Positions 7,902 through 59,766 of a DNA stretch of 64,000 bases are shown piece after piece. The stretch is from the IMG/VR virus record IMGVR_UViG_3300003322_000571, positions 1-64,000 of that record. One strand, 5' to 3'. The notes beneath the pieces were generated by a model, which saw only the letters and a list, made by a program, of their open reading frames with translations, searched no databases and had not been told where the DNA came from. A program made the position numbers and the translations under genes. Position 1 is the stretch's first letter, and every line of letters starts with the position of its first letter.

Positions 7902-8378
7902 ATGGCAGACAAAATTACCAAAGAGAAGATTGAAGCAGTTGTATCCGATTGCCAATCTTTTAGAGAGTTAACGATCAAACTTGGCCGAGCGCCGTTAGGC
8001 GGAAACATCTCAGAGATGAAACGCAGGTGTATCAAACTGGGAATCGACACGTCCCATATGCTTGGGAAATCTCATGCTAAGGGAAGTACATCTAACAAAA
8101 GACGAACACCCGCTGAGATATTGGTGGAACGTGATCGATTGCAAGGACGTGCACCTATTGAACAGTTACGTAGAGCACTAAAAGAAAGTGGTGTACAGTA
8201 TCAATGTCAAGTATGTTCGTTAAAAGATTGGAACGGTAAGCCGTTAACTTTACACATCGATCACATAGATGGCCAATACTGGAACTGTAGATTGACGAAT
8301 TTGAGGTACATTTGTCCTAATTGTCATTCGCAGACACCCACGTATTGTGGCAAAAACGTTAATGCCCACGTATGCTAA
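7902..8378 (+). CDS. HNH homing endonuclease
   Basis: CQVC...LHIDHIDG...NLRYICPNCHSQT. Confidence 0.9.
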   Translation: MADKITKEKIEAVVSDCQSFRELTIKLGRAPLGGNISEMKRRCIKLGIDTSHMLGKSHAKGSTSNKRRTPAEILVERDRLQGRAPIEQLRRALKESGVQYQCQVCSLKDWNGKPLTLHIDHIDGQYWNCRLTNLRYICPNCHSQTPTYCGKNVNAHVC

Positions 8379-10416: not shown

Positions 10417-11076
10417 ATGCCTGCACCCATCACAGACGTTATCTTCGTTGACGTCGACGGCCCAATGATTCCTCAACGGGCTGCATATCTCCCCTTCCAA
10501 TCCAAACGTTACGATGCATTCGATCCTTGTGCATCGTCGCTGCTGCTTCGTCTAATTGAAGACGCACAAGAAGCTGACCGTGTGATCAAGATCGTTGTGT
10601 CTAGCACGTGGCGAAAGCTTGGACGTGCTGCTTGCGATCAACTGTTTGAACAGAATGGAATTGATCCGTCGCATTTCCATGATGACTGGGCTACACCGAC
10701 AAAAATGTCGGCAACACGGACAGACGAAATTCTGTTGTGGCTGCGAGATCATCCAGAAGTGACAACATGGGTTGCACTCGATGATGAACACCTTAGCTGG
10801 GAACATCTGCCGAACGCAATTCAATGCGACTTGTATGATGGTTTCACGTGGCGAAACTACATCGAGTGTCGACTGCTTCTCAATCTTGATGACCCTTCAG
10901 CTCCGTTGAATCAACCATACAACCGTGAGAAATTGGCGTCTCAAGTTGATTTCTTCAAACGTCGTGAGATCACTAGGACGAAACGACGTAGTGAGCCAGG
11001 CTATTATCAGCTGTCTCAGTTTGCCGAACAAGTGTTTCCAATCGTGCGACCTGCACAAGATAAGGACGAGCAATGA
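10417..11076 (+). CDS. HAD-domain protein (Swiss-Army-knife RNA-repair type)
   Basis: IFVDVDG, IVVSSTWR, WVALDD. Confidence 0.8.
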   Translation: MPAPITDVIFVDVDGPMIPQRAAYLPFQSKRYDAFDPCASSLLLRLIEDAQEADRVIKIVVSSTWRKLGRAACDQLFEQNGIDPSHFHDDWATPTKMSATRTDEILLWLRDHPEVTTWVALDDEHLSWEHLPNAIQCDLYDGFTWRNYIECRLLLNLDDPSAPLNQPYNREKLASQVDFFKRREITRTKRRSEPGYYQLSQFAEQVFPIVRPAQDKDEQ

Positions 11077-11576
11077 TCAAGTATGTCGAGTGCCCTGAAT
11101 ACCATCTGGAATCGAAGATTTCGGAGTATACGGTGTTCCTGGCTGGTGGGATTTCGAACTGCCACAATTGGCAGGCTGACATCGTTGATATGTTCGAGGA
11201 CACGTACAAGCCTGAAGACTACGACCTCGATCTGATTCTGATCAATCCTCGTCGTGCCAACTTTGATATTGAAGATCCGGACATGAGCCGTGAACAGATC
11301 GAATGGGAGTTCGAGCATCTTCATGCTGTTGACCTGACACTGTTCTGGTTCCCTCCGGAGACGCTGTGCCCGATCACTCTGTTCGAGCTTGGAGCGGCTG
11401 CGTCTGATCCTAATCGTCAGATCGTCGTTGGTTGTCATCCTGACTATGCACGCAAGTTTGATGTTGAAGTCCAACTTGCGTTACAACGTCCTGGAGCGAA
11501 GGTTGTTGTCCATACCTCGCTTGATGGACTGGTCAAGGAAGTCAACGACACACTGCATCTGTTGAACAATTTTTGA
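11073..11576 (+). CDS. nucleoside 2-deoxyribosyltransferase-like protein
   Basis: VFLAGGI, NPRR, QIEWE, PITLFELG. Confidence 0.85.
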   Translation: MIKYVECPEYHLESKISEYTVFLAGGISNCHNWQADIVDMFEDTYKPEDYDLDLILINPRRANFDIEDPDMSREQIEWEFEHLHAVDLTLFWFPPETLCPITLFELGAAASDPNRQIVVGCHPDYARKFDVEVQLALQRPGAKVVVHTSLDGLVKEVNDTLHLLNNF

Positions 11577-11988
11577 GTAAGGTCTAGTCTACCGCTAGCG
11601 AAAGCTAGAGGAAGTTCGGGGCTGCAAAGAGCAAAGGGTGATCGCTCTGTGGGAGGTCTCGTGTGCGTTTAGGACGCCCTTGCGAGTATCGGACAACCGG
11701 GTTGGTGGGAAGACTTGATGGCGTTAGCCTTGGAAATCTCATCATTAGGCACGTATGACCGCTTGTACCACAACGATTCTGCAGCAAGCCAAACAGTTCT
11801 CGATGACTCTGCTCGACGAGGGAACGGGTTGGTGCACCTATGACCTGGTTTGAAAGCCAGCGAGGATAGGATGGTCATGATGGAAATATCCGCGTAACTG
11901 CAGTGAACACTCCGCATGATTGCCTATAGATGAATGGTAGACACAGTGATTTACGTCACTGCACATAACCCCGGCTATTGACCTTACT
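11576..11988 (+). ncRNA. rnpB: RNase P RNA
   Basis: P1 AGTAAGGTC/GACCTTACT; CR-I-like GAGGAAGTTCGGGGCT pairing with CR-V-like ACATAACCCCGGCTA; AGATGAATG. Confidence 0.85.
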
Positions 11989-12350
11989 CAACTTCTACTA
12001 GCCTTAAGATACTGGACAGCGTTCAACAAAATCTGTTCATTATCTTTGGCTAATCCAAGCAGCAGGTTGCATTCGCGGCAAAGGATACCACGAATGTTGC
12101 CCGTTGTATGGCAGTGATCAACTGCATACGTAGACGGATAGTTTGGATCAAGTGCCTTACAACAGATTCCGCACATGCACGACTGAGCAACAGTCATCTG
12201 TTGCTTCTCGTCCAGTGTGATTCCGTATGTTCGAACTAGATGGTCATTAGGTGAAACCTTGACCTTTGGCTTGAACTTGAGAGGTGCAGGTTCCCCGTCA
12301 AGCAGATGGTCTAGTTCTCGATCTTCCTTACGTCGCTTGTAAATACTCAT
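11988..12350 (-). CDS. endonuclease VII-family endonuclease
   Basis: CGIC...VDHCHTTGNIRGILCRECN. Confidence 0.9.
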   Translation of the reverse strand: MSIYKRRKEDRELDHLLDGEPAPLKFKPKVKVSPNDHLVRTYGITLDEKQQMTVAQSCMCGICCKALDPNYPSTYAVDHCHTTGNIRGILCRECNLLLGLAKDNEQILLNAVQYLKASRS

Positions 12351-12682: not shown

Positions 12683-14170
12683 ATGAATATTCGTCAATCC
12701 GAAGACATCATCCGTCGCCGCGCTGAACTGTGGGCTGAGCTGGAAGCTCTGGAAGATCCCCGCACAATCACGTCGCTTGCCGACAACCCCATCCTCGATA
12801 CTGACAGCTACAAGCTGTGCCACCAGGCAATGTACAACATTCTTGGTGTGACCAAGTCGTTCTCGTACATCGAGCCTCGAATTCACGACAAGACGATGTT
12901 CTTCGCAGGCCTTCAGATGTATCTGAAGCGTATGAAGCCGATCACGCACAAGATGGTTGATCAGGCGAAGGAATTCTTCGGCAAGCACATCATCGGTGGT
13001 GCTGAGATGTTCCCGGAAGCTGACTGGCGCCGTGTCGTCGATGAATTCGGTGGTTATCCTCCGATCAAGATTCGTGCACTGCCGGAAGGTACTGTGATCA
13101 AGTCGCGTAACGCGCTGGTCACGATCGAATGTGACGTTCCTGGCCTCAGCTGGCTCGCTGCGTACTACGAAACTGCGATCCTTCGCGCTGTGTGGTATCC
13201 GACGACCGTCGCTTCGAAGAGCTACGACATTCGTCAAATGCTTCGCAAGTTCGCTGAACAGACGAGCGATCTGTCTGTCGAAGAAGTCGTCATGTTCATG
13301 TACCATGACTTCGGTGCGCGTGGTGTGTCGAGTTTCGAATCTGCCGGCCTCGGTGGCGCAGCCCACATTCTTGCAGGGTCGTGGGGTACTGACACGATCA
13401 CAGGTGCGATCTTCGCCAACGAACTGTACGGCTCTGACATGAGCGCGTTCAGTGTGTTTGCTACGGAACACAGCATCATGACGATGCGTGGCCGTGAAGG
13501 TGAACTGCAGACGGTTCGTGACATCATCAAGACGTACAACAAGGGTCCTGGGACGATCGTGTCGATCGTTTCTGACGGGTACGACATCTTCAATCTTGCT
13601 GACCATTACTGCACGACGCTGAAGCAGGAAATCATCGACGCAGGTATTCGCCTTGTTGTTCGTCCTGACTCTGGTGATGCTGTTGACGTAATCTGCAAGC
13701 TGCTGCTGAAGTTCGAAGCAGCTTACGGCGTGACGGTCAACAGCAAGGGATACAAGGTGTTGAACACCGTTCGTATCCTGCAAGGTGACGGCCTGTCGAC
13801 GGTCGAAGATTTCGCCAAGATCGTTGGTGCGGTCATCGCTCTGGGATTCGGCATTGAGAACCTCGTGTTCGGTATGGGTGGTGGTCTCTTGCAGATCGTC
13901 AACCGTGACCTGTACAAGTTTGCGATGAAGACTTGTGCTGCGGAAGTCAACGGTCAGTGGATCGATGTGTTCAAGGATCCTGTTACTGACCAAGGAAAGC
14001 GCTCGAAGAAGGGTCGTCTGACGGTCGTCAAGCGCAACGATGAAGCGATCACCGTTCGCTTGGAAGAAGTACTGCCGACTGATGTCGAACTGATGCAAGA
14101 CGTGTGGTATGCCGGTACTCTGTACAAGAGCTACAACGTCGAACAGGTTCGTGCAAACAGCCGTGCATAA
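12683..14170 (+). CDS. nadV: nicotinamide phosphoribosyltransferase
   Basis: DTDSYK, HDFGARG, ATEHS, RPDSGD, QGDG, FGMGG, FAMK motifs. Confidence 0.95.
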   Translation: MNIRQSEDIIRRRAELWAELEALEDPRTITSLADNPILDTDSYKLCHQAMYNILGVTKSFSYIEPRIHDKTMFFAGLQMYLKRMKPITHKMVDQAKEFFGKHIIGGAEMFPEADWRRVVDEFGGYPPIKIRALPEGTVIKSRNALVTIECDVPGLSWLAAYYETAILRAVWYPTTVASKSYDIRQMLRKFAEQTSDLSVEEVVMFMYHDFGARGVSSFESAGLGGAAHILAGSWGTDTITGAIFANELYGSDMSAFSVFATEHSIMTMRGREGELQTVRDIIKTYNKGPGTIVSIVSDGYDIFNLADHYCTTLKQEIIDAGIRLVVRPDSGDAVDVICKLLLKFEAAYGVTVNSKGYKVLNTVRILQGDGLSTVEDFAKIVGAVIALGFGIENLVFGMGGGLLQIVNRDLYKFAMKTCAAEVNGQWIDVFKDPVTDQGKRSKKGRLTVVKRNDEAITVRLEEVLPTDVELMQDVWYAGTLYKSYNVEQVRANSRA

Positions 14171-14241
14171 AGTTGCCCACTTCCAGGGTAACCTAGAATA
14201 TAGAGGGGTCAAAAGACCCCTCTTTTTATTTGGAGAATCAA

Positions 14242-14481
14242 ATGGATATTTTCAACAAGCTGACTGCTCACCTGGACGTTGAACAGCTCCGTGAATTGGT
14301 CAAAGCTGCTGCTGAGAAAGAGTCTGACCGTCCCGTCGAATCGATCACTTTTAATGTCGAGAGTCGCTGTGAGGGATACGGAATGAATGAACGAATGGTT
14401 CAAGTGTTCACCGGTGCAACGATCGTGTTTGGTAAACAAACAGAGCAGTCGGTCACTTTTACTCGTGTTCAGAAGAAATGA
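14242..14481 (+). CDS. hypothetical protein
   Basis: GGAG RBS. Confidence 0.6.
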   Translation: MDIFNKLTAHLDVEQLRELVKAAAEKESDRPVESITFNVESRCEGYGMNERMVQVFTGATIVFGKQTEQSVTFTRVQKK

Positions 14482-14563
14482 CCAAATAAATGAACTGTTG
14501 TTAACCTAATTATTTTAGGTTACTATGTTCTACCTTTAATTGCTCTTTAGGAGGAGGTTTTTT

Positions 14564-15220
14564 ATGAAGGCTTTGATTTCTCTTGCGCTCGCACTGGCGG
14601 CAAGCACAGCAGCTGTTGCTGCACCGGTCACTTCGAACGTGACCGTTGACGGTTTCGCGTACGGTTCTCGTTCTGTCGAATATGACACGAACAAGGCTGA
14701 CGGGCTTGCAGCGGCTGGTGGGTTCAACATCACGTCCGGCAACCAGTCGTTCCTGGCGTACTGCATCGAACTGACGCAAAATACGTACTTCGGTGCGATC
14801 AATACGTACACGTCGCTTTCGCCGTCGTCGTACTTCAGCAGCTCGAAGGTGTCGACTGATCTCGGTCGCCTGTTCGGTACGTTCGGCTCGTCGATTAACA
14901 CGACCGACGAGTCTGCTGCTTTCCAGATGGCAGTCTGGGAAATTGTGTACGAGAACGGCAATGGCAACAACAAGTACGATGTGACGAAGGGGTCTGCGCA
15001 GTTCAACAGCTTCTCCGCTGTTGAGACGCAAGCGAACTACTACCTGTCGCATCTCGGCAACACGTCGTCTTCGCTGACCGTGTTCTCGAACGGTAAATAC
15101 CAGGATCTGATCGCCGCCGTCGTGCCGACCAGCCCGGTTCCGGAACCTTCGTCGATCGCTTTGATCGGCGCTGGTCTCGCTGCTCTCGGCTTCGTTGCCC
15201 GCCGTAAGAAGGCAAACTAA
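14564..15220 (+). CDS. PEP-CTERM sorting-domain secreted protein
   Basis: Signal peptide; AYCIEL, AAFQMAVWEI; C-terminal VPEPSSIALIGAGLAALGFVARRK. Confidence 0.92.
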   Translation: MKALISLALALAASTAAVAAPVTSNVTVDGFAYGSRSVEYDTNKADGLAAAGGFNITSGNQSFLAYCIELTQNTYFGAINTYTSLSPSSYFSSSKVSTDLGRLFGTFGSSINTTDESAAFQMAVWEIVYENGNGNNKYDVTKGSAQFNSFSAVETQANYYLSHLGNTSSSLTVFSNGKYQDLIAAVVPTSPVPEPSSIALIGAGLAALGFVARRKKAN

Positions 15221-15247
15221 GTCTGACCTCAACAAGTAGGAGTGTAT

Positions 15248-16069
15248 ATGTACAAGTGCATGTTTGCGTTTGTCGCTCTGATCTTCAGTGCGTCGACGTT
15301 TGCTGCTGCACCGCAGGTCGTTCCTACTTGTTCGTGGGATCAACCTGGACAAAACCGCTTCACCGGTAACGTCATTGCAGCAGTCGACAACTACAAGGAC
15401 ATCCCTGTAGAGACGCGCGAAAAGCTCAAAAAGCGGCTCGCCAATCCAAAGAATTACGACGACAACGTCGTAATCAAGCGTAACGGAATCGTAGGCTCTA
15501 AGCAATACGATTCTGAACTGTCGCAGATGCATTTCGGTGCAAACAAAGTGTGCCAATCGGTCACACGTGACAAGTGGAAGGAAGACCAAGAAGAACGCGG
15601 TCTTGTGTTCTGTGAAGATGGTTACTGCGTCGTGTTGCCGACTGTATGTGGCAATTTGTCGCGTGTCAATCGTCGTGGATCACTTGGCGGTGGAGCTCCT
15701 GGTGAACACGGTGGTGCCCCGTACGAAGAACTTGCTTACATGCCAGCTCTTCCACCGGAATTGACAACGTTTGCAAATCCGCAAGATCCGTTCGAACCTT
15801 TGCCGGTGTTGAATCCACCACTCCTGCCAACTGATCCATTGTTTGGACCAGGACCTGGAGGTGGTTGGAATGGTGGCTGGTACAATCCACCGGCTGTTGT
15901 GTTCTTCCCGCCGGTCATCTTGCCGCCTGGTAAACCACCGTTCGTTGGACCACCAACTCCACCTGTGATCAATCCACCGACTACACCAGTTCCTGAGCCT
16001 GAAACCTGGGCACTGATGATTATCGGAATCGTAGCACTCGTAGCTGCGAAGAAACTGAAGGGCCGCTAA
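15248..16069 (+). CDS. MHFG-family PEP-CTERM protein
   Basis: CSWDQPG, MHFG, ERGLVFC, PTVCGNLSR; C-terminal VPEPETWALMIIG. Confidence 0.88.
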   Translation: MYKCMFAFVALIFSASTFAAAPQVVPTCSWDQPGQNRFTGNVIAAVDNYKDIPVETREKLKKRLANPKNYDDNVVIKRNGIVGSKQYDSELSQMHFGANKVCQSVTRDKWKEDQEERGLVFCEDGYCVVLPTVCGNLSRVNRRGSLGGGAPGEHGGAPYEELAYMPALPPELTTFANPQDPFEPLPVLNPPLLPTDPLFGPGPGGGWNGGWYNPPAVVFFPPVILPPGKPPFVGPPTPPVINPPTTPVPEPETWALMIIGIVALVAAKKLKGR

Positions 16070-16140
16070 GGCCCTTTTTCTTTGCTTGTTGAATTGAATT
16101 ACGGGTCATTCTATACTGGACGTTACTTTCTGGAGATTCC

Positions 16141-16983
16141 ATGTTTGCCAACATCGTCGCTGTTCCGAAGCTGAATGCACCCGATTCACGAGATGTGCTC
16201 GGATTGGTCAGCCATTCCAAACTAGCTGCACACGAACTGGGAATCAACTGCGAAGTATACGATCCGCAAAAGTCCTACGAAGGTACTACACTGTACCTGG
16301 CACTGGGCGGCGATGGCACAATGATCCATGCAATGAAGCTCGCGACCCAACATGGTGATGATGGATATGCGTACGGGATCAACCTTGGTAATGTTGGATT
16401 CTTGACGGAGCTCGGCTTGCGTGAGTTCCCGTACTTTGAACTGTACGACACGTTGATCGATCTGTTTAAGTTCGACAGTATGTACTACGAAGAGAGGATC
16501 GTCATTGAGACGACCGAACCGTATTCGTTGTCGGTCAACGAAGTTTCAATTTCTCAGCTGTATGCTGACGCAATGATTACGTACAGTCTTCGTGTTGATG
16601 GCCAAGATGCAGGCATTCACAAAGCGAACAGTCTTCTGATCGCTACTTCAACTGGTTCCACTGCCTATGCATTGTCGGCGGGTGGCGCTTTGATGACACC
16701 GACGCTGAAAGCGCTTCAGCTTGTTCCCGTCGCTCCAATTAAACTGACAGCTCGTCCGATCATTGTTCCGCACGATGCAAAGATTCAGGTTGAGGTGTGG
16801 GGCGAAGGTATTGCTGTCCGCACTGATGGCCAAGTGTTGATGCGGAGTTCTGATGTGTGGACAGAAAGCAATCCGTTCAAACTGACGCTGACGTCACACA
16901 ACAAGTTCGCCAAGGTTCTGCACAAGAATGGTTGGAATTTCTTTGATGTTCTCGCGGAGAAACTCGGATGGATGAAGAAGTGA
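16141..16983 (+). CDS. nadK: NAD+ kinase
   Basis: LGGDGT, GINLGNVGFL, NE, TSTGSTAYALSAGG. Confidence 0.92.
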   Translation: MFANIVAVPKLNAPDSRDVLGLVSHSKLAAHELGINCEVYDPQKSYEGTTLYLALGGDGTMIHAMKLATQHGDDGYAYGINLGNVGFLTELGLREFPYFELYDTLIDLFKFDSMYYEERIVIETTEPYSLSVNEVSISQLYADAMITYSLRVDGQDAGIHKANSLLIATSTGSTAYALSAGGALMTPTLKALQLVPVAPIKLTARPIIVPHDAKIQVEVWGEGIAVRTDGQVLMRSSDVWTESNPFKLTLTSHNKFAKVLHKNGWNFFDVLAEKLGWMKK

Positions 16984-17576
16984 AGTACGATTGGGAGAAA
17001 CTGCGGGACGAATTCAGTAAACACACAGTTAGGCATCCGACACTGATAGCAGTGATGCCACTTGTAGACCCACCTCGAGTGTTGAGTAGCCAAACTCCAG
17101 GCATTTATCCTGACAGAGACTACAGTCTCAAACGTATGTTGGACGCACCGATTATTGAGTTCAAGGACAAATACCATTTCCTGTCAAACTTCCACACTTC
17201 GGAGTTTGAATGGAGAGGAATTGTTTGGCCTAACGCAGAAGCTGCATACCAATCCGCGAAATCGGATAATCCGGCAGATTGGGAACGGTTCTCGAAGTTC
17301 ACCAATCCTGTTGTAGCAAAACGCGCCGGTAAGCAACTGAACCTTCGTTCAGATTGGGAGAAGGTCAAGATCCGGATTATGCTTGAAATTGTCCTGGCGA
17401 AATTCAGTCAGAACGATGAGTTGAAGCAACTATTGCTTGATACAGGTGACGCTCATCTTGAAGAAGGTAATTACTGGGGCGATAGGATTTGGGGTGTTAG
17501 CCCCGCGGGTTCAGGCCGAGGTCATAACTACCTCGGTCAAATTTTGATGCAAGTGAGGTCATATCTTCGTGGCTGA
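16968..17576 (+). CDS. NADAR (YbiA) family protein
   Basis: FLSNF, EAAYQSAK, KFSQN, WGDRIWG, NYLGQILM. Confidence 0.92.
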   Translation: MDEEVKYDWEKLRDEFSKHTVRHPTLIAVMPLVDPPRVLSSQTPGIYPDRDYSLKRMLDAPIIEFKDKYHFLSNFHTSEFEWRGIVWPNAEAAYQSAKSDNPADWERFSKFTNPVVAKRAGKQLNLRSDWEKVKIRIMLEIVLAKFSQNDELKQLLLDTGDAHLEEGNYWGDRIWGVSPAGSGRGHNYLGQILMQVRSYLRG

Positions 17577-22736: not shown

Positions 22737-22951
22737 TGGAACTAAAGGTACGAGCAATTGTCCGTGTTAAGCGAGCAAACGTCGAGTTTGCTCCAGGACT
22801 TGGAATTGGTGTCCTTGCAACACAAGAGTTCAAAGTTCAAGTGCCGTTGGGTCGAACTGTGACCGATCACAGAGTTTCAGCTTGCATTCATGATGTTGGA
22901 CAAGCATTGCTTGACGATAGTGTAGAAGTAATCTACGAGGAAGTGAAATGA
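22736..22951 (+). CDS. hypothetical protein
   Basis: Translationally coupled ORF. Confidence 0.6.
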
Positions 22952-24021
22952 AAATCTACCTTGTCGGCGGTGCAGTTCGCGATATCCTTCTTGGTCTTGA
23001 GCCGAAGGATCGTGACTACGTCGTTGTTGGTGCAACTCCTGAAGATATGCTCGCTAAGGGCTTTTCGAAAGTTGGTGCATCGTTTCCTGTGTTCCTTCAT
23101 CCTGAAACTGGTGAAGAGTACGCTCTTGCACGTACCGAACGGAAGACGGGCGTTGGTTACAACGGGTTTGACGTGACGTTCGATACGTCTATCACTCTGG
23201 AAGATGACCTTCGTCGTCGTGATCTGACGATCAATTCAATGGCAATGGACCTCGAAACGAACGAGATCATTGATCCGTTCGGTGGTCAAAGTGATCTCAA
23301 GCGAAAGATCCTCCGTCATACAAGTGAAGCGTTTGCTGAGGATCCGGTTCGTGTTCTTCGTACTGCTCGGTTCGCAGCTCGGTACGGGTTTGATGTGTCA
23401 GAAACGACACTGGAGCTGATGGAACAGGTCGCTCCAGAACTTGACCATGTTCCTGCGGAACGAATCTTCGCCGAGTTCCAGAAGGGCTTGATGGAGAAAG
23501 CTCCGTACAGGATGCTTGGTGTACTGGTACAGTGCTACGCTGACAACGTTAAGTCGGTTGAACCATTTCTTCGTGGTGATCATGATCTGTGGCAACGTCT
23601 GCACCTTGTTCGAGATGATACGCCGTTGCATGTTCGGTTTGCTCTGATCGCTCGTCGCTTCCACCCGGAAGATTACGAAGCGTGCAAGATTCCTACAGAC
23701 CTTGCACGAGTGGCGAAAGCAGTTCAGTCGCACTTCTATCAATGGAAGGGACTTCGTACTTGCTCTGATGAACGGTTCGTTAAGATGTGTGACAGATACC
23801 GTGCTTTCAGCAACCCGGACTTCTTCCAGCAAGTGCTCGATGTATTTGAATTCATTGAACATCCGTACGCGATCAAAGGTGTATGGCGTGAACCTATCAA
23901 CGAACGTCTGGCGTTGGCAACGAGCATCGATGCTGCAACAATTGTTGCTAGTCTGCCGATTAAAGACGGCAAGTTGATTCAGGCGAAGATTCACGAAGCA
24001 CGTCTTGCCGCAATGAAGTAA
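22948..24021 (+). CDS. cca: tRNA nucleotidyltransferase (CCA-adding enzyme)
   Basis: [40 protein letters not shown]. Confidence 0.95.
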
Positions 24022-58275: not shown

Positions 58276-58823
58276 TTTACTTGTTTTTAGATACGGAGTT
58301 CACCTCGTTTGAACAACCAGAGCTGATCTCCATTGGCATCGTTTCGGAAGACGGTCAACATGAATTCTACCGTGAAGTGTCCGACCACAATGCGTATAAA
58401 CGTAGCCAGTTCGTCAAGGACGTCGTCATCCCGTTGTTGTTCAACGACTACGCAACAAGCATGATTCGTGAGTACGTTGCTATGGATCTCAACAAGTGGA
58501 TCGATAGCCTCCCAACCGATCAAGTGACAATTGTTGTTGATTATCCTGGTGACTGGCATCTCGTTAAGCCATTGCTTGATAAGGTGTCTGAGCGACGCGT
58601 TAAGATCAATGCTGAGATGCGTAATCACTCGTTCCTTGCTGCTGCACGGTACCGAGCTGTTGATGTCTCGCCTGAAAAGACATTGGAAGCAATGTTCGTG
58701 ATGGAGGAGTCTGAAGAGGCTTACTTCAAGACAGATCCTCGTCAACATCACGCTTTGGTCGATGCACGAGCAATGCGTGCTGGATGGATTGCAGCTTTGG
58801 AGGTTCTCAATGGACAGCAATAA
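58272..58823 (+). CDS. DEDDh 3'-5' exonuclease
   Basis: FLDTEF, LISIGIV, HHALVDA. Confidence 0.88.
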   Translation: MIYLFLDTEFTSFEQPELISIGIVSEDGQHEFYREVSDHNAYKRSQFVKDVVIPLLFNDYATSMIREYVAMDLNKWIDSLPTDQVTIVVDYPGDWHLVKPLLDKVSERRVKINAEMRNHSFLAAARYRAVDVSPEKTLEAMFVMEESEEAYFKTDPRQHHALVDARAMRAGWIAALEVLNGQQ

Positions 58824-59766
58824 ACTACTAGGAGGCTTTTATGGCCTCGTTCTTGGTGATGCTGTTGGTGTTCCGTTTGAATTTCAACAGCCGCGCCAAC
58901 TACCGCCGCTGTCAAAAATCGACATTGTGATGGCTGATGTTCCCAAGTTCACCAAAACATATCCGCAAGTCCCGTACGGTACCTGGTCCGATGACACAGC
59001 ATTGTCATTGTGTCTTCTTGATGCGTTGCTTGATTTTACCGAGCCGGAGATGTGGCACGGCGACTTTGTCGAGAATATGCAAAATTGGCGATTCCATGGC
59101 AAATTTACTCCGTATAACGAGAAGAAATTTGACATTGGGTTGCAGACTGCCATGGCATTGACTGAACTGGAAGACGGATTGAGTATTCAGGCGCGTGTGG
59201 ACGGCCCAGATCGTTGTGGAAACGGTGCTTTGATGCGTAGCCTTCCAGTTGCCCTCGTGTATGCTTACGTACCAGACCACGACGTTCGTGCAAACTTAAT
59301 TGCCAATGTTACACTCGATCACGTCAATGCTACCCACGCGAACATGATGAGCAAGATTGTCAGTTTGGCGTATACGTTGCTGGCATCATATCTTCTCGAT
59401 GGAGTGTATTGGTTCGATGCCATTGATCTGGCGCTTGATAAGACCGAACAACTTCTTGGTGAAGCTTATAAGGATGACATGTTGAAGTTCCGAGCTTATG
59501 AGCATCGTGAACCAACAGGAACAGGCTACTCTGTTGATACATTCTGGTCTGCGATTTATGCATTGAAGGCTGGTTCAGACTTCCGTACAACGATTCAGCA
59601 TGCTATTTCACTTGGCAACGATACAGACACAACTGCATGCGTTGCTGGTGGACTCGCGGGGATTATCTACGGGTTTGATCGTCTTCCTGTTGATTGGCTT
59701 GCACATCTTCGCGATAAGCAACAAATTGATCAATATGCTCAGCGACTACTAATTATCTCACTATGA
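58810..59766 (+). CDS. ADP-ribosylglycohydrolase
   Basis: GDAVGVPFEF, WSDDT, GNGALMR, GNDTDT. Confidence 0.93.
   Translation: MDSNKLLGGFYGLVLGDAVGVPFEFQQPRQLPPLSKIDIVMADVPKFTKTYPQVPYGTWSDDTALSLCLLDALLDFTEPEMWHGDFVENMQNWRFHGKFTPYNEKKFDIGLQTAMALTELEDGLSIQARVDGPDRCGNGALMRSLPVALVYAYVPDHDVRANLIANVTLDHVNATHANMMSKIVSLAYTLLASYLLDGVYWFDAIDLALDKTEQLLGEAYKDDMLKFRAYEHREPTGTGYSVDTFWSAIYALKAGSDFRTTIQHAISLGNDTDTTACVAGGLAGIIYGFDRLPVDWLAHLRDKQQIDQYAQRLLIISL

Follow-up and report, generated by a model that had tools for sequence, protein, structure and literature searches.

A 350-kb jumbo phage genome encodes two PEP-CTERM surface proteins, one with a predicted thioester-domain fold, and no exosortase

A complete jumbo phage genome of 350,089 bp carries two intact tandem genes for surface proteins of a bacterial type that depends on an exosortase for sorting, an enzyme that the phage does not encode. 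The first protein (ORF A, 218 aa) has the predicted fold of the thioester domain (TED), the "covalent harpoon" of Gram-positive adhesins, and the second (ORF B, 273 aa) is a clear member of the MHFG family of PEP-CTERM proteins. At least four distantly related jumbo-phage contigs carry a TED-type gene, an MHFG-type gene or both, and none carries an exosortase. The analysis was centered on the first 64,000 nucleotides of IMG/VR record IMGVR_UViG_3300003322_000571 (the window), to which all coordinates refer. A first-pass annotation of the letters alone had reported, at 14564-16069, two tandem secreted proteins with intact VPEP-transmembrane-basic tails, one of MHFG type, followed by a terminator and without an exosortase in the window, and this observation is confirmed, although the thioester-domain fold of ORF A had gone unnoticed. 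The locus is laid out as follows.

12683..14170 (+), left flank, the phage NAMPT gene (phrog_448, E 7.5e-136)
14202..14223 (+), terminator-like hairpin (9 pairs, 6 G-C) with a T-run just after the NAMPT gene, marking the left edge of the cassette
14242..14481 (+), small ORF of about 80 aa with no family match and no signal peptide, inside the same terminator-bracketed unit; three of three differences from the soil relative are synonymous
14498..14526 (+), weak sigma-70-like promoter candidate (TTGTTA, 17 nt, TACTAT; 8 of 12 matches), below the scan threshold, overlapping an A+T-rich hairpin and inferred only
14550..14557 (+), Shine-Dalgarno site GGAGGAGG, 6 nt before the ORF A start codon
14564..15220 (+), ORF A, a TED-fold PEP-CTERM protein (ATG at 14564, stop at 15218-15220): signal peptide, about aa 1-19; TED, about aa 22-188; Cys67 codon at 14762-14764 (YCIE motif); helix motif FQMAVW at aa 120-125; Gln180 codon at 15101-15103 (YQDLI motif); PEP-CTERM tail, aa 191-216
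15238..15242 (+), Shine-Dalgarno site AGGAG, 5 nt before the ORF B start codon
15248..16069 (+), ORF B, an MHFG-family PEP-CTERM protein (ATG at 15248, stop at 16067-16069): signal peptide, about aa 1-21; Cys-rich MHFG domain, aa 26-145 (MHFG codons at 15527-15538); proline-rich disordered linker, aa 146-245; PEP-CTERM tail, aa 247-273
16057..16077 (+), intrinsic-terminator-like hairpin (8 pairs, 5 G-C; -18 kcal/mol, z -2.3) with a T-run, overlapping the ORF B stop codon and marking the right edge of the cassette
16141..17576 (+), right flank, NAD kinase (16141-16983) and an NADAR-domain gene (16968-17576), so that the cassette sits inside an NAD-metabolism cluster

To test the assignment to the PEP-CTERM proteins, as the first-pass annotation had proposed, both translations were compared with the curated models. 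ORF A scores 26 bits against TIGR02595 (cut-off 16) and 29.9 bits against Pfam PF07589 (gathering score 20.7), and ORF B scores 19.4 and 20.9 bits, with both matches ending within 4–8 residues of the C-terminus. As read from the sequence alone, both proteins have a hydrophobic N-terminal signal-like segment ending in small residues (AVA followed by AP in ORF A, TFA followed by AA in ORF B), and both tails have the VPEP motif, a hydrophobic helix and a basic end. Consistent with this, the AF2 models give an N-terminal helix and a terminal helix at 195–217 (ORF A) and 252–272 (ORF B). ORF B further matches NF038119, the MHFG family PEP-CTERM protein equivalog model, at 227.4 bits (cut-off 100; E 3.7e-67) over profile positions 2–257 of 260, and it keeps every invariant residue of 25 bacterial homologues, namely C28, W30, M94–G97, C102, C122, C127 and C134. 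Its 120-aa Cys-rich domain, carried on a proline-rich stalk of roughly 100 aa, matches no solved fold (best Z 3.3), and Foldseek on the PDB, the VIA wide search and the ESM Atlas gave nothing beyond the family itself.

The model of ORF A (pLDDT 87.7) matches 12 listed TED entries with Z scores of 9.9–12.8 over 137–166 aligned residues, whereas the next chain scores 4.0, and the best Foldseek matches are almost all TEDs (probability 1.00, E down to 4.4e-6). Among 36 family members the only invariant residues outside the tail are C67, W125 and Q180, and these fall in the [YFL]C-hydrophobic-hydrophilic, TQxx-hydrophobic-W and hydrophobic-Q-hydrophilic-hydrophobic-hydrophobic motifs defined for TEDs (Walden et al., 2015; PMC4450167). 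The Cys lies in Y66-C67-I-E at the end of strand 61–67 and is the only Cys in the protein, and the Gln lies in Y179-Q180-D-L-I; the two are 113 residues apart, against a median of 117 in 149 top family representatives, of which 99 have exactly one Cys. The sequence-level match is weaker, however, as ORF A scores 14.7 bits against Pfam PF08341, below its gathering score of 22, 22 of the 36 members match this model only weakly (best E 8.5e-4), and a profile of the family finds no PDB sequence. The thioester bond itself is inferred from the fold and the conserved residues.

The carrier is a phage. The record is circularly assembled with a 25-base end overlap, is rated 100% complete by CheckV, and holds 56 tRNAs, baseplate and virion PHROG matches, and NAMPT and tRNA nucleotidyltransferase genes, but no tyrosine integrase. 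The first-pass annotation had named host contamination or misassembly as what would overturn it, and the evidence leaves this reading all but excluded. It is true that the close homologues are all bacterial and that the Logan contigs of the source run break inside the ORF A tail, the two pieces overlapping by only 12 bases at 15182–15193. Nevertheless, in that second assembly one contig joins NAMPT to ORF A and the other runs from the ORF A tail through ORF B to NAD kinase and beyond, at equal depth (9.0 and 8.9), and an independent 2024 soil metagenome holds 95–99% identical fragments that include the intergenic region plus the ORF A start (junction 14486–14755). The genes share strand and spacing with their neighbours 14.5 kb inside a 350-kb contig, and the best identities to bacterial proteins are only 42% and 57%. 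Their GC content of 0.52–0.56 compares with 0.62–0.76 in the bacterial MHFG genes and 0.62–0.68 in three ORF A-family genes, and ORF B has a GC3 of 0.49, against a phage mean of 0.51 and 0.85 (minimum 0.69) in 73 bacterial homologues.

That the two genes are passengers captured from a host, without a role and not yet lost, appears unlikely. In its favour, the GC3 of ORF A (0.70) is in the top 4% of phage genes, so that it may be a later arrival or still adapting, the cassette is bracketed by terminator-like hairpins like a recent insertion, and jumbo phages carry many host-derived genes of unclear use. Against it, ORF B is fully adapted to phage composition, both reading frames are intact and keep all family-invariant residues, and the same two families occur at different positions in at least four other distantly related jumbo-phage contigs. 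Of these, G007 (369 kb, end repeats, 100% complete) has both a TED-type and an MHFG-type gene, G008 has a TED-type gene, and G009 and G010 have MHFG-type genes; a phiKZ-like fragment, G001, has a divergent MHFG-like gene. Ten high-GC IMG/VR contigs with MHFG genes (L106, L108–L113, L115, L117 and L118) were set aside as possible prophage or host flank. No relative with an empty site was found, as NAD kinase is absent from G007–G010, and NAMPT lies about 10 kb and 34 kb from the MHFG gene in G007 and G009. Searches of 50,697 GenBank phage records with both proteins (tblastn) gave no match, and the 8-kb neighbourhood (blastn) matched only short NAMPT pieces.

In phylogenetic analyses, ORF B lies on a very long branch each time, nesting in a Sphaerotilaceae clade in one quick tree and basal in another, and we draw no donor from this unstable placement. 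Keeping all phage MHFG sequences as one clade is not rejected (p-AU 0.56), which is compatible with long vertical retention. Capture of a pre-existing bacterial tandem was rejected, since no ORF A-type domain lies within 6 kb of any of 80 bacterial MHFG loci, and in genomes that hold both families the genes are at separate places.

No exosortase (PF09721) was found in the window, in the whole phage record, in which these two ORFs are the only PEP-CTERM matches, or in the five further viral records tested (G007–G011). By contrast, all five MHFG-bearing bacterial genomes tested as candidate hosts have one to four exosortases, and each has 12–58 matches to the ORF A-family profile, most of them to its PEP-CTERM tail. 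Dependence on the host enzyme is therefore the only way the tails could be processed. The likely hosts, inferred only from the taxonomic range of the gene families, are Sphaerotilaceae (Roseateles/Pelomonas/Rubrivivax).

No RNA run was found to hold the stretch, and no convincing promoter was found. No sigma-70-like site upstream reaches the scan threshold, and the T4-late-like ATAAATA motif that this phage has 29–43 nt upstream of about 30 genes (34 motif–gene pairs) is absent here, with ATAAATG lying 78 nt upstream.

The interpretation given in the first-pass annotation, that the phage uses the host exosortase to remodel the host surface or aggregation or to block superinfection, is partly supported. 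What the data establish is a phage-resident gene pair between NAMPT and NAD kinase, flanked by terminator-like hairpins, encoding two proteins with signal peptides and exosortase-type tails, a compact single domain of TED fold by prediction with the residues that form and support the thioester in Gram-positive adhesins, a full MHFG-family protein, and the recurrence of both protein types in distantly related jumbo phages of about 350–390 kb without an exosortase. Expression, export, sorting, thioester chemistry and every surface function are inferences. We tentatively suggest that, during infection of a Sphaerotilaceae-type host, the proteins would be exported by Sec, and that the host exosortase would cleave their tails and pass them to the cell surface or exopolysaccharide layer, where the TED would react covalently with an amine on the matrix or on a neighbouring cell and the MHFG domain would be held out on its stalk; we do not claim that the two proteins bind each other. 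In our preferred reading this would fix the infected cell inside the floc, biofilm or root-surface matrix, so that progeny are released among dense susceptible hosts, with blocking of further phage adsorption a possible side effect or alternative. This remains a hypothesis, the more so as no phenotype of any MHFG or TED-PEP-CTERM protein is known.

Superinfection exclusion, in which the two proteins would coat or covalently cap the surface or EPS of the infected cell so that other phages or sister virions cannot reach their receptor, any aggregation being incidental, is possible but doubtful. Many phages encode surface or envelope proteins that use host sorting pathways to block receptors, T5 Llp among them, the genes sit in a non-structural, tRNA- and metabolism-rich region without the late-promoter motif, which fits early expression, and as the genome shows no tyrosine integrase any benefit would have to arise within a single infection. 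However, a reactive thioester adhesin and a stalked domain are not what known exclusion proteins look like, no receptor is known, and the bacterial homologues are ordinary chromosomal genes that are not linked to phage defence. The TED fold of ORF A favours an adhesion or cross-linking role over simple receptor masking. Less likely still is that abundant phage-made PEP-CTERM proteins act as decoys that saturate the host exosortase or its export route, lowering display of host surface proteins and weakening the matrix, which would help progeny escape. The phage does supply substrates but no enzyme, both genes have strong ribosome-binding sites, and G007 also carries a 75-aa mini-protein that is little more than a signal peptide and a PEP-CTERM tail. 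A decoy would not need its cargo domains, yet the TED catalytic residues and all MHFG invariant residues are kept after long divergence, shown by tree branches of 1.6–2.3 against medians of 0.05–0.13, and the same two cargo types recur in several phages.

More speculatively, and in our view less likely than not, a lineage of roughly 350–390 kb jumbo phages of floc- and biofilm-forming Burkholderiales may have kept, possibly since a single ancient capture, a two-part surface kit of covalent thioester adhesin and MHFG protein that the host exosortase displays on infected cells, gluing them into the matrix, so that the phage would manipulate host aggregation for its own transmission. The same data suggest that TED plus PEP-CTERM is the Gram-negative counterpart of the Gram-positive TED plus LPXTG adhesins, which would give exosortase-dependent floc formation a covalent chemistry.

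PEP-CTERM/exosortase sorting is widespread in environmental, activated-sludge and root-associated Gram-negative bacteria, but almost none of its substrates has a known function. Phage copies that survived long adaptation to phage codon usage pick out two substrate families as worth keeping, out of the 12–58 PEP-CTERM-tail matches in each candidate host genome, and so give a compact, testable entry point. If ORF A forms a thioester, covalent adhesion extends from Gram-positive pathogens to Gram-negative floc formers and to phages. It would also be an example of a virulent jumbo phage re-dressing its host's surface with a sorting enzyme that it does not encode, which bears on floc stability in wastewater treatment and on phage spread in root biofilms. 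In the literature library searched, we found no paper on phage-encoded exosortase substrates, on the MHFG family, or on TEDs with PEP-CTERM tails.

Among described systems, ORF B is closest to the MHFG proteins (NF038119) of Burkholderiales, mainly Sphaerotilaceae, which it matches over the full length, including signal peptide, invariant Cys, Trp and MHFG residues, proline-rich linker and tail, although it is phage-encoded and only 35–58% identical to the bacterial genes. The latter are single chromosomal copies, in many loci flanked upstream by a small response-regulator gene and downstream by a large conserved gene that is UvrA-like where called, in a neighbourhood clustering made noisy by antisense frames from crude ORF calling in DNA of about 70% GC. 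ORF A shares with the TEDs (PF08341) of SfbI, Cpa, FNE and the TIE proteins the predicted fold, the three motifs, and the layout of an N-terminal domain after a signal peptide with a C-terminal sorting signal. It differs in having a PEP-CTERM/exosortase rather than an LPXTG/sortase signal, in consisting of one minimal domain of about 165 aa without isopeptide-domain stalks, and in its setting in a Gram-negative bacterium or a phage, whereas TEDs were found 'exclusively in Gram-positive bacteria' (Walden et al., 2015; PMC4450167). Phage morons that encode host-sorted surface proteins (lambda Lom and Bor; T5 Llp) are small genes that are not needed for virion building, are bracketed by transcription signals, and have products that rely on the host's envelope-sorting machinery, which the present cassette may resemble, with terminator-like hairpins on both sides but no convincing promoter. 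Here the pathway would be exosortase rather than Lol or BAM, the cargo domains are different, and the carrier is an apparently virulent jumbo phage rather than a temperate one. The flocculation-associated protein PepA of Zoogloea (NF033554), the only PEP-CTERM protein known to us with a demonstrated aggregation phenotype (Gao et al., 2018, cited in PMC12642866), was considered as a relative of ORF A and rejected: ORF A matches its model only weakly (32 bits, cut-off 80), and true PepA members from two candidate host genomes have no Cys and no Q..W helix, so that PepA is not a TED.

Two + strand ORFs lie exactly where the first-pass annotation placed its pair of phage-borne PEP-CTERM surface proteins, and that observation is confirmed and extended here. 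The two ORFs and their surroundings are as follows.

12683-14170: NAMPT gene, upstream neighbour
14202-14223: G+C-rich hairpin with a T-run, following the NAMPT gene
14242-14481: ORF of 80 aa, with no family match and no signal peptide
14550-14557: strong Shine-Dalgarno site of ORF A, GGAGGAGG
14564-15220, + strand: ORF A, 218 aa
15238-15242: strong Shine-Dalgarno site of ORF B, AGGAG
15248-16069, + strand: ORF B, 273 aa
16057-16077: G+C-rich hairpin with a T-run, overlapping the ORF B stop codon
16141-17576: NAD kinase plus an NADAR gene

Each protein begins with a short basic and hydrophobic segment ending in small residues, and each ends with VPEP, a hydrophobic helix and a basic cluster. 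Both tails pass the curated PEP-CTERM cut-offs, with ORF A scoring 26 bits on TIGR02595 (cut-off 16) and 29.9 on PF07589 (20.7), and ORF B scoring 19.4 and 20.9 on the same two models. ORF B also matches NF038119, the MHFG family, at 227.4 bits against a cut-off of 100. The two terminator-like hairpins thus bracket a unit of about 1.85 kb that holds the 80-aa ORF, ORF A and ORF B, and that sits between NAMPT and the NAD kinase and NADAR genes. Together with an ADP-ribosylglycohydrolase at 58762-59766, these neighbours make up an NAD-related gene set, suggesting that the phage rebuilds or protects the NAD pool, possibly against NAD-depleting defences. RNA and DNA repair-type genes are also present at 10417-12350 and 22948-24021, namely an HAD domain of 'Swiss Army Knife' RNA repair proteins, a nucleoside 2-deoxyribosyltransferase-like gene, endonuclease VII (- strand) and tRNA nucleotidyltransferase.

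The carrier is a complete jumbo phage. The window is the first 64 kb of a 350,089-bp virus record (G000) that IMG/VR classes as having direct terminal repeats and that CheckV rates as 100% complete, and we found that its last 25 bases repeat the first 25, which is the signature of a circular assembly. The window has 30 tRNA genes (426-47008), all on the + strand and many in small clusters separated by short ORFs, and the whole genome has 56. PHROG matches include baseplate-wedge and virion proteins, tRNA nucleotidyltransferase, NAMPT and ADP-ribosylglycohydrolase. The GC content of the phage is 0.48, against about 0.62-0.70 for the loci of its presumed hosts. Profile searches of the entire genome identified neither an exosortase (PF09721) nor a tyrosine integrase (PF00589), and the two ORFs are its only PEP-CTERM matches.

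The genes are not the product of host contamination or misassembly, which had been named beforehand as grounds for rejecting the observation. Among 506 crudely called phage ORFs the mean GC3 is 0.508 (sd 0.095); ORF B has a GC3 of 0.491, while ORF A, at 0.702, lies at the 96th percentile. By comparison, 73 bacterial MHFG genes have a mean GC3 of 0.854 and a minimum of 0.687, and three bacterial ORF A-type genes have 0.80-0.94. In Logan's independent contigs of the probable source run, a root metagenome, one 10.9-kb contig runs from NAMPT to position 15193 and a 13.8-kb contig runs from 15182 through ORF B into the NAD kinase region, both being identical to the window and having a depth of about 9. 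The only weak link is that these two pieces overlap by just 12 bases (15182-15193), inside the region encoding the ORF A tail, although the depth is the same on both sides. A nearby 38-base stretch (15392-15429) also matches a 1.3-kb high-GC contig at depth 45, probably a bacterial MHFG gene in the same sample. Further supporting residence in the phage, a 2024 soil metagenome from another study holds fragments 95-99% identical to the window, including 14486-14755 (the intergenic region plus the ORF A start) and 14873-15107, and a groundwater sample holds 14244-14535. Differences from the soil relative are synonymous in NAMPT (12 of 12) and in the small ORF (3 of 3), the latter being conserved with only synonymous changes in the soil and groundwater relatives, whereas in ORF A two are synonymous and one, D29N, is not.

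All close homologues of ORF B (35-58% identity) are bacterial and come from Roseateles, Pelomonas, Mitsuaria, Paucibacter, Rubrivivax, Aquincola and related Burkholderiales, with confirmed matches in 284 species genomes. The phage protein keeps every invariant residue of the family. The AF2 model is confident for residues 35-145, which form a predicted alpha+beta Cys-rich domain, while residues 147-245, the proline-rich linker, are disordered. No solved or Atlas structure resembles the domain, the best Z being 3.3 and the Foldseek E values all being at least 0.25. In bacteria the gene is a single chromosomal copy, and in many loci a small response-regulator gene lies just upstream and a large conserved gene lies downstream; where genes were called, that downstream gene is a UvrA paralogue. 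We found no paper on the family.

ORF A is predicted to adopt a thioester-domain (TED) fold. Its homologues are at most 42% identical and nearly all come from metagenomes, and an alignment of 36 members has only three invariant positions outside the tail: C67, W125 and Q180. The AF2 model has a pLDDT of 87.7, and its best Foldseek matches are almost all thioester domains of Gram-positive adhesins, namely SfbI, Cpa, FNE, the S. aureus, E. faecium and B. anthracis TIE proteins, and a C. perfringens TED, with E values down to 4.4e-6. VIA-align gives Z 9.9-12.8 over 137-166 aligned residues for the 12 TED entries listed, and then drops to 4.0 for the next chain. TEDs are defined by three motifs (Walden et al., 2015; PMC4450167), and ORF A has all three: a Cys in [YFL]C-hydrophobic-hydrophilic (YCIE in ORF A), a helical TQxx-hydrophobic-W motif (FQMAVW in ORF A, inside predicted helix 114-130), and the thioester Gln in hydrophobic-Q-hydrophilic-hydrophobic-hydrophobic (YQDLI in ORF A). 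C67 is the only cysteine in ORF A. Of the 149 best family representatives, 99 have exactly one Cys and 102 carry all three motifs, and the median Cys-to-Gln spacing is 117 residues. The sequence-level link to Pfam TED is weak, with ORF A scoring 14.7 bits against a gathering score of 22 and 22 of 36 relatives giving sub-threshold matches, and formation of the thioester bond itself is inferred from the fold and motifs alone. These single-TED plus PEP-CTERM proteins of about 215-250 aa form a large, unnamed family, with 735 clusters at 50% identity matching the profile at E <= 1e-30; no NCBIfam model covers them above cut-off, the nearest being NF038129 at 34 bits against a cut-off of 65. Walden et al. 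reported TEDs 'exclusively in Gram-positive bacteria', and we found no paper that links TEDs with PEP-CTERM or with Proteobacteria.

The same two protein types recur in other jumbo phages, as listed below.

Table. Other viral records carrying TED-type or MHFG-type genes
G007 (IMGVR_UViG_3300045971_000577); 369,145 bp, terminal repeats, 100% complete; an MHFG protein (205 bits, GC3 0.27) and, at another place, a TED-type PEP-CTERM protein (hhalign to the ORF A family: probability 99.7%, E 3.9e-25, with the Cys, helix and Gln motifs aligned), next to which is a 75-aa mini PEP-CTERM protein; no exosortase
G008; 152.7 kb, 39% complete; a TED-type protein, 39% identical to that of G007
G009; 41.7 kb, 12% complete; an MHFG protein, 228 bits
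G010; 21.7 kb, 6% complete; an MHFG protein, 126 bits
G001; 72 kb, phiKZ-like fragment with RNA-polymerase beta-subunit genes; a divergent MHFG-like PEP-CTERM protein whose motif reads MHWRG (L003:2565-3431; 97.4 bits, just under the family cut-off), next to thymidylate synthase; barely related to G000

The mini protein of G007 (L119:10014-10241, - strand) lies directly downstream of the TED-type gene and is little more than a signal peptide, about 25 residues with two Cys, and a PEPxxWA-type tail (39 bits, cut-off 35). G007-G010 share 1-7 ORFs with G000 per 20 kb fetched, at 25-62% identity, and we read them as distant kin of about 350-390 kb. The positions of the genes are not syntenic among these phages. 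Ten further IMG/VR contigs with MHFG genes have host-like GC and were not counted. In trees of the 118-column MHFG core, the phage sequences sit on very long branches (ORF B 1.6-2.3, against medians of 0.05-0.13) and their placement is unstable. Forcing all phage and phage-like sequences into one clade is not rejected (log-likelihood +1.33, p-AU 0.56), but this group was named after the tree had been seen, and long-branch attraction may be at work.

All five MHFG-bearing bacterial genomes that we tested have 1-4 exosortase genes, and each also gives 12-58 matches to the ORF A-family profile, most of them to its PEP-CTERM tail. Three of the five also have a full-length ORF A-type gene, which is never next to the MHFG gene, and in a sample of 61 genomes from the same family, 9 have ORF A-type genes. 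The tandem arrangement is therefore a phage construct. Sphaerotilaceae are inferred to be the host from the range of the gene families and from the root and soil origin of the samples.

The first-pass annotation had proposed that the phage uses the host exosortase to remodel the host surface or aggregation, or to block superinfection, and this interpretation is supported only in part: the phage setting is supported, and the need for a host exosortase follows from the phage lacking the enzyme, whereas the phenotypes remain hypotheses. What the analysis itself establishes is that intact secreted-protein genes with exosortase sorting signals reside in a phage that lacks the enzyme, that one product has a predicted TED fold with its reactive-pair motifs, and that both types recur in related phages. 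Export by Sec, tail processing by the host exosortase, display on the infected cell or in its EPS layer, and covalent attachment by the TED to an amine-bearing target are, by contrast, inferences. We prefer an adhesion or aggregation role, in which the infected cell would be held in the floc, biofilm or root matrix, as this is what TEDs do elsewhere and as it also explains why the cargo domains, and not only the tails, are conserved. Superinfection exclusion, saturation of the exosortase, and carriage as functionless passengers are the rival explanations. Phage auxiliary (moron-type) surface proteins are already familiar; what differs here is the use of a sorting pathway and a predicted covalent-adhesin fold not described in phages in the sources that we could search.

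No RNA data were found for the cassette, whose expression is likewise inferred. Upstream of ORF A only a sub-threshold sigma-70-like site exists, at 14498-14526, and a T4-late-like ATAAATA motif found elsewhere in the phage is not present. This motif (often C/G-ATAAATA-C/T) lies 29-43 nt upstream of about 30 genes (34 motif-gene pairs), including the gene starts at window positions 7902, 26280, 46978, 48853 (-), 49517 and 56320 (-) and 28 more across G000, and 73% of all copies are intergenic. It resembles the T4 late-promoter element TATAAATA and may mark the late genes of this phage.
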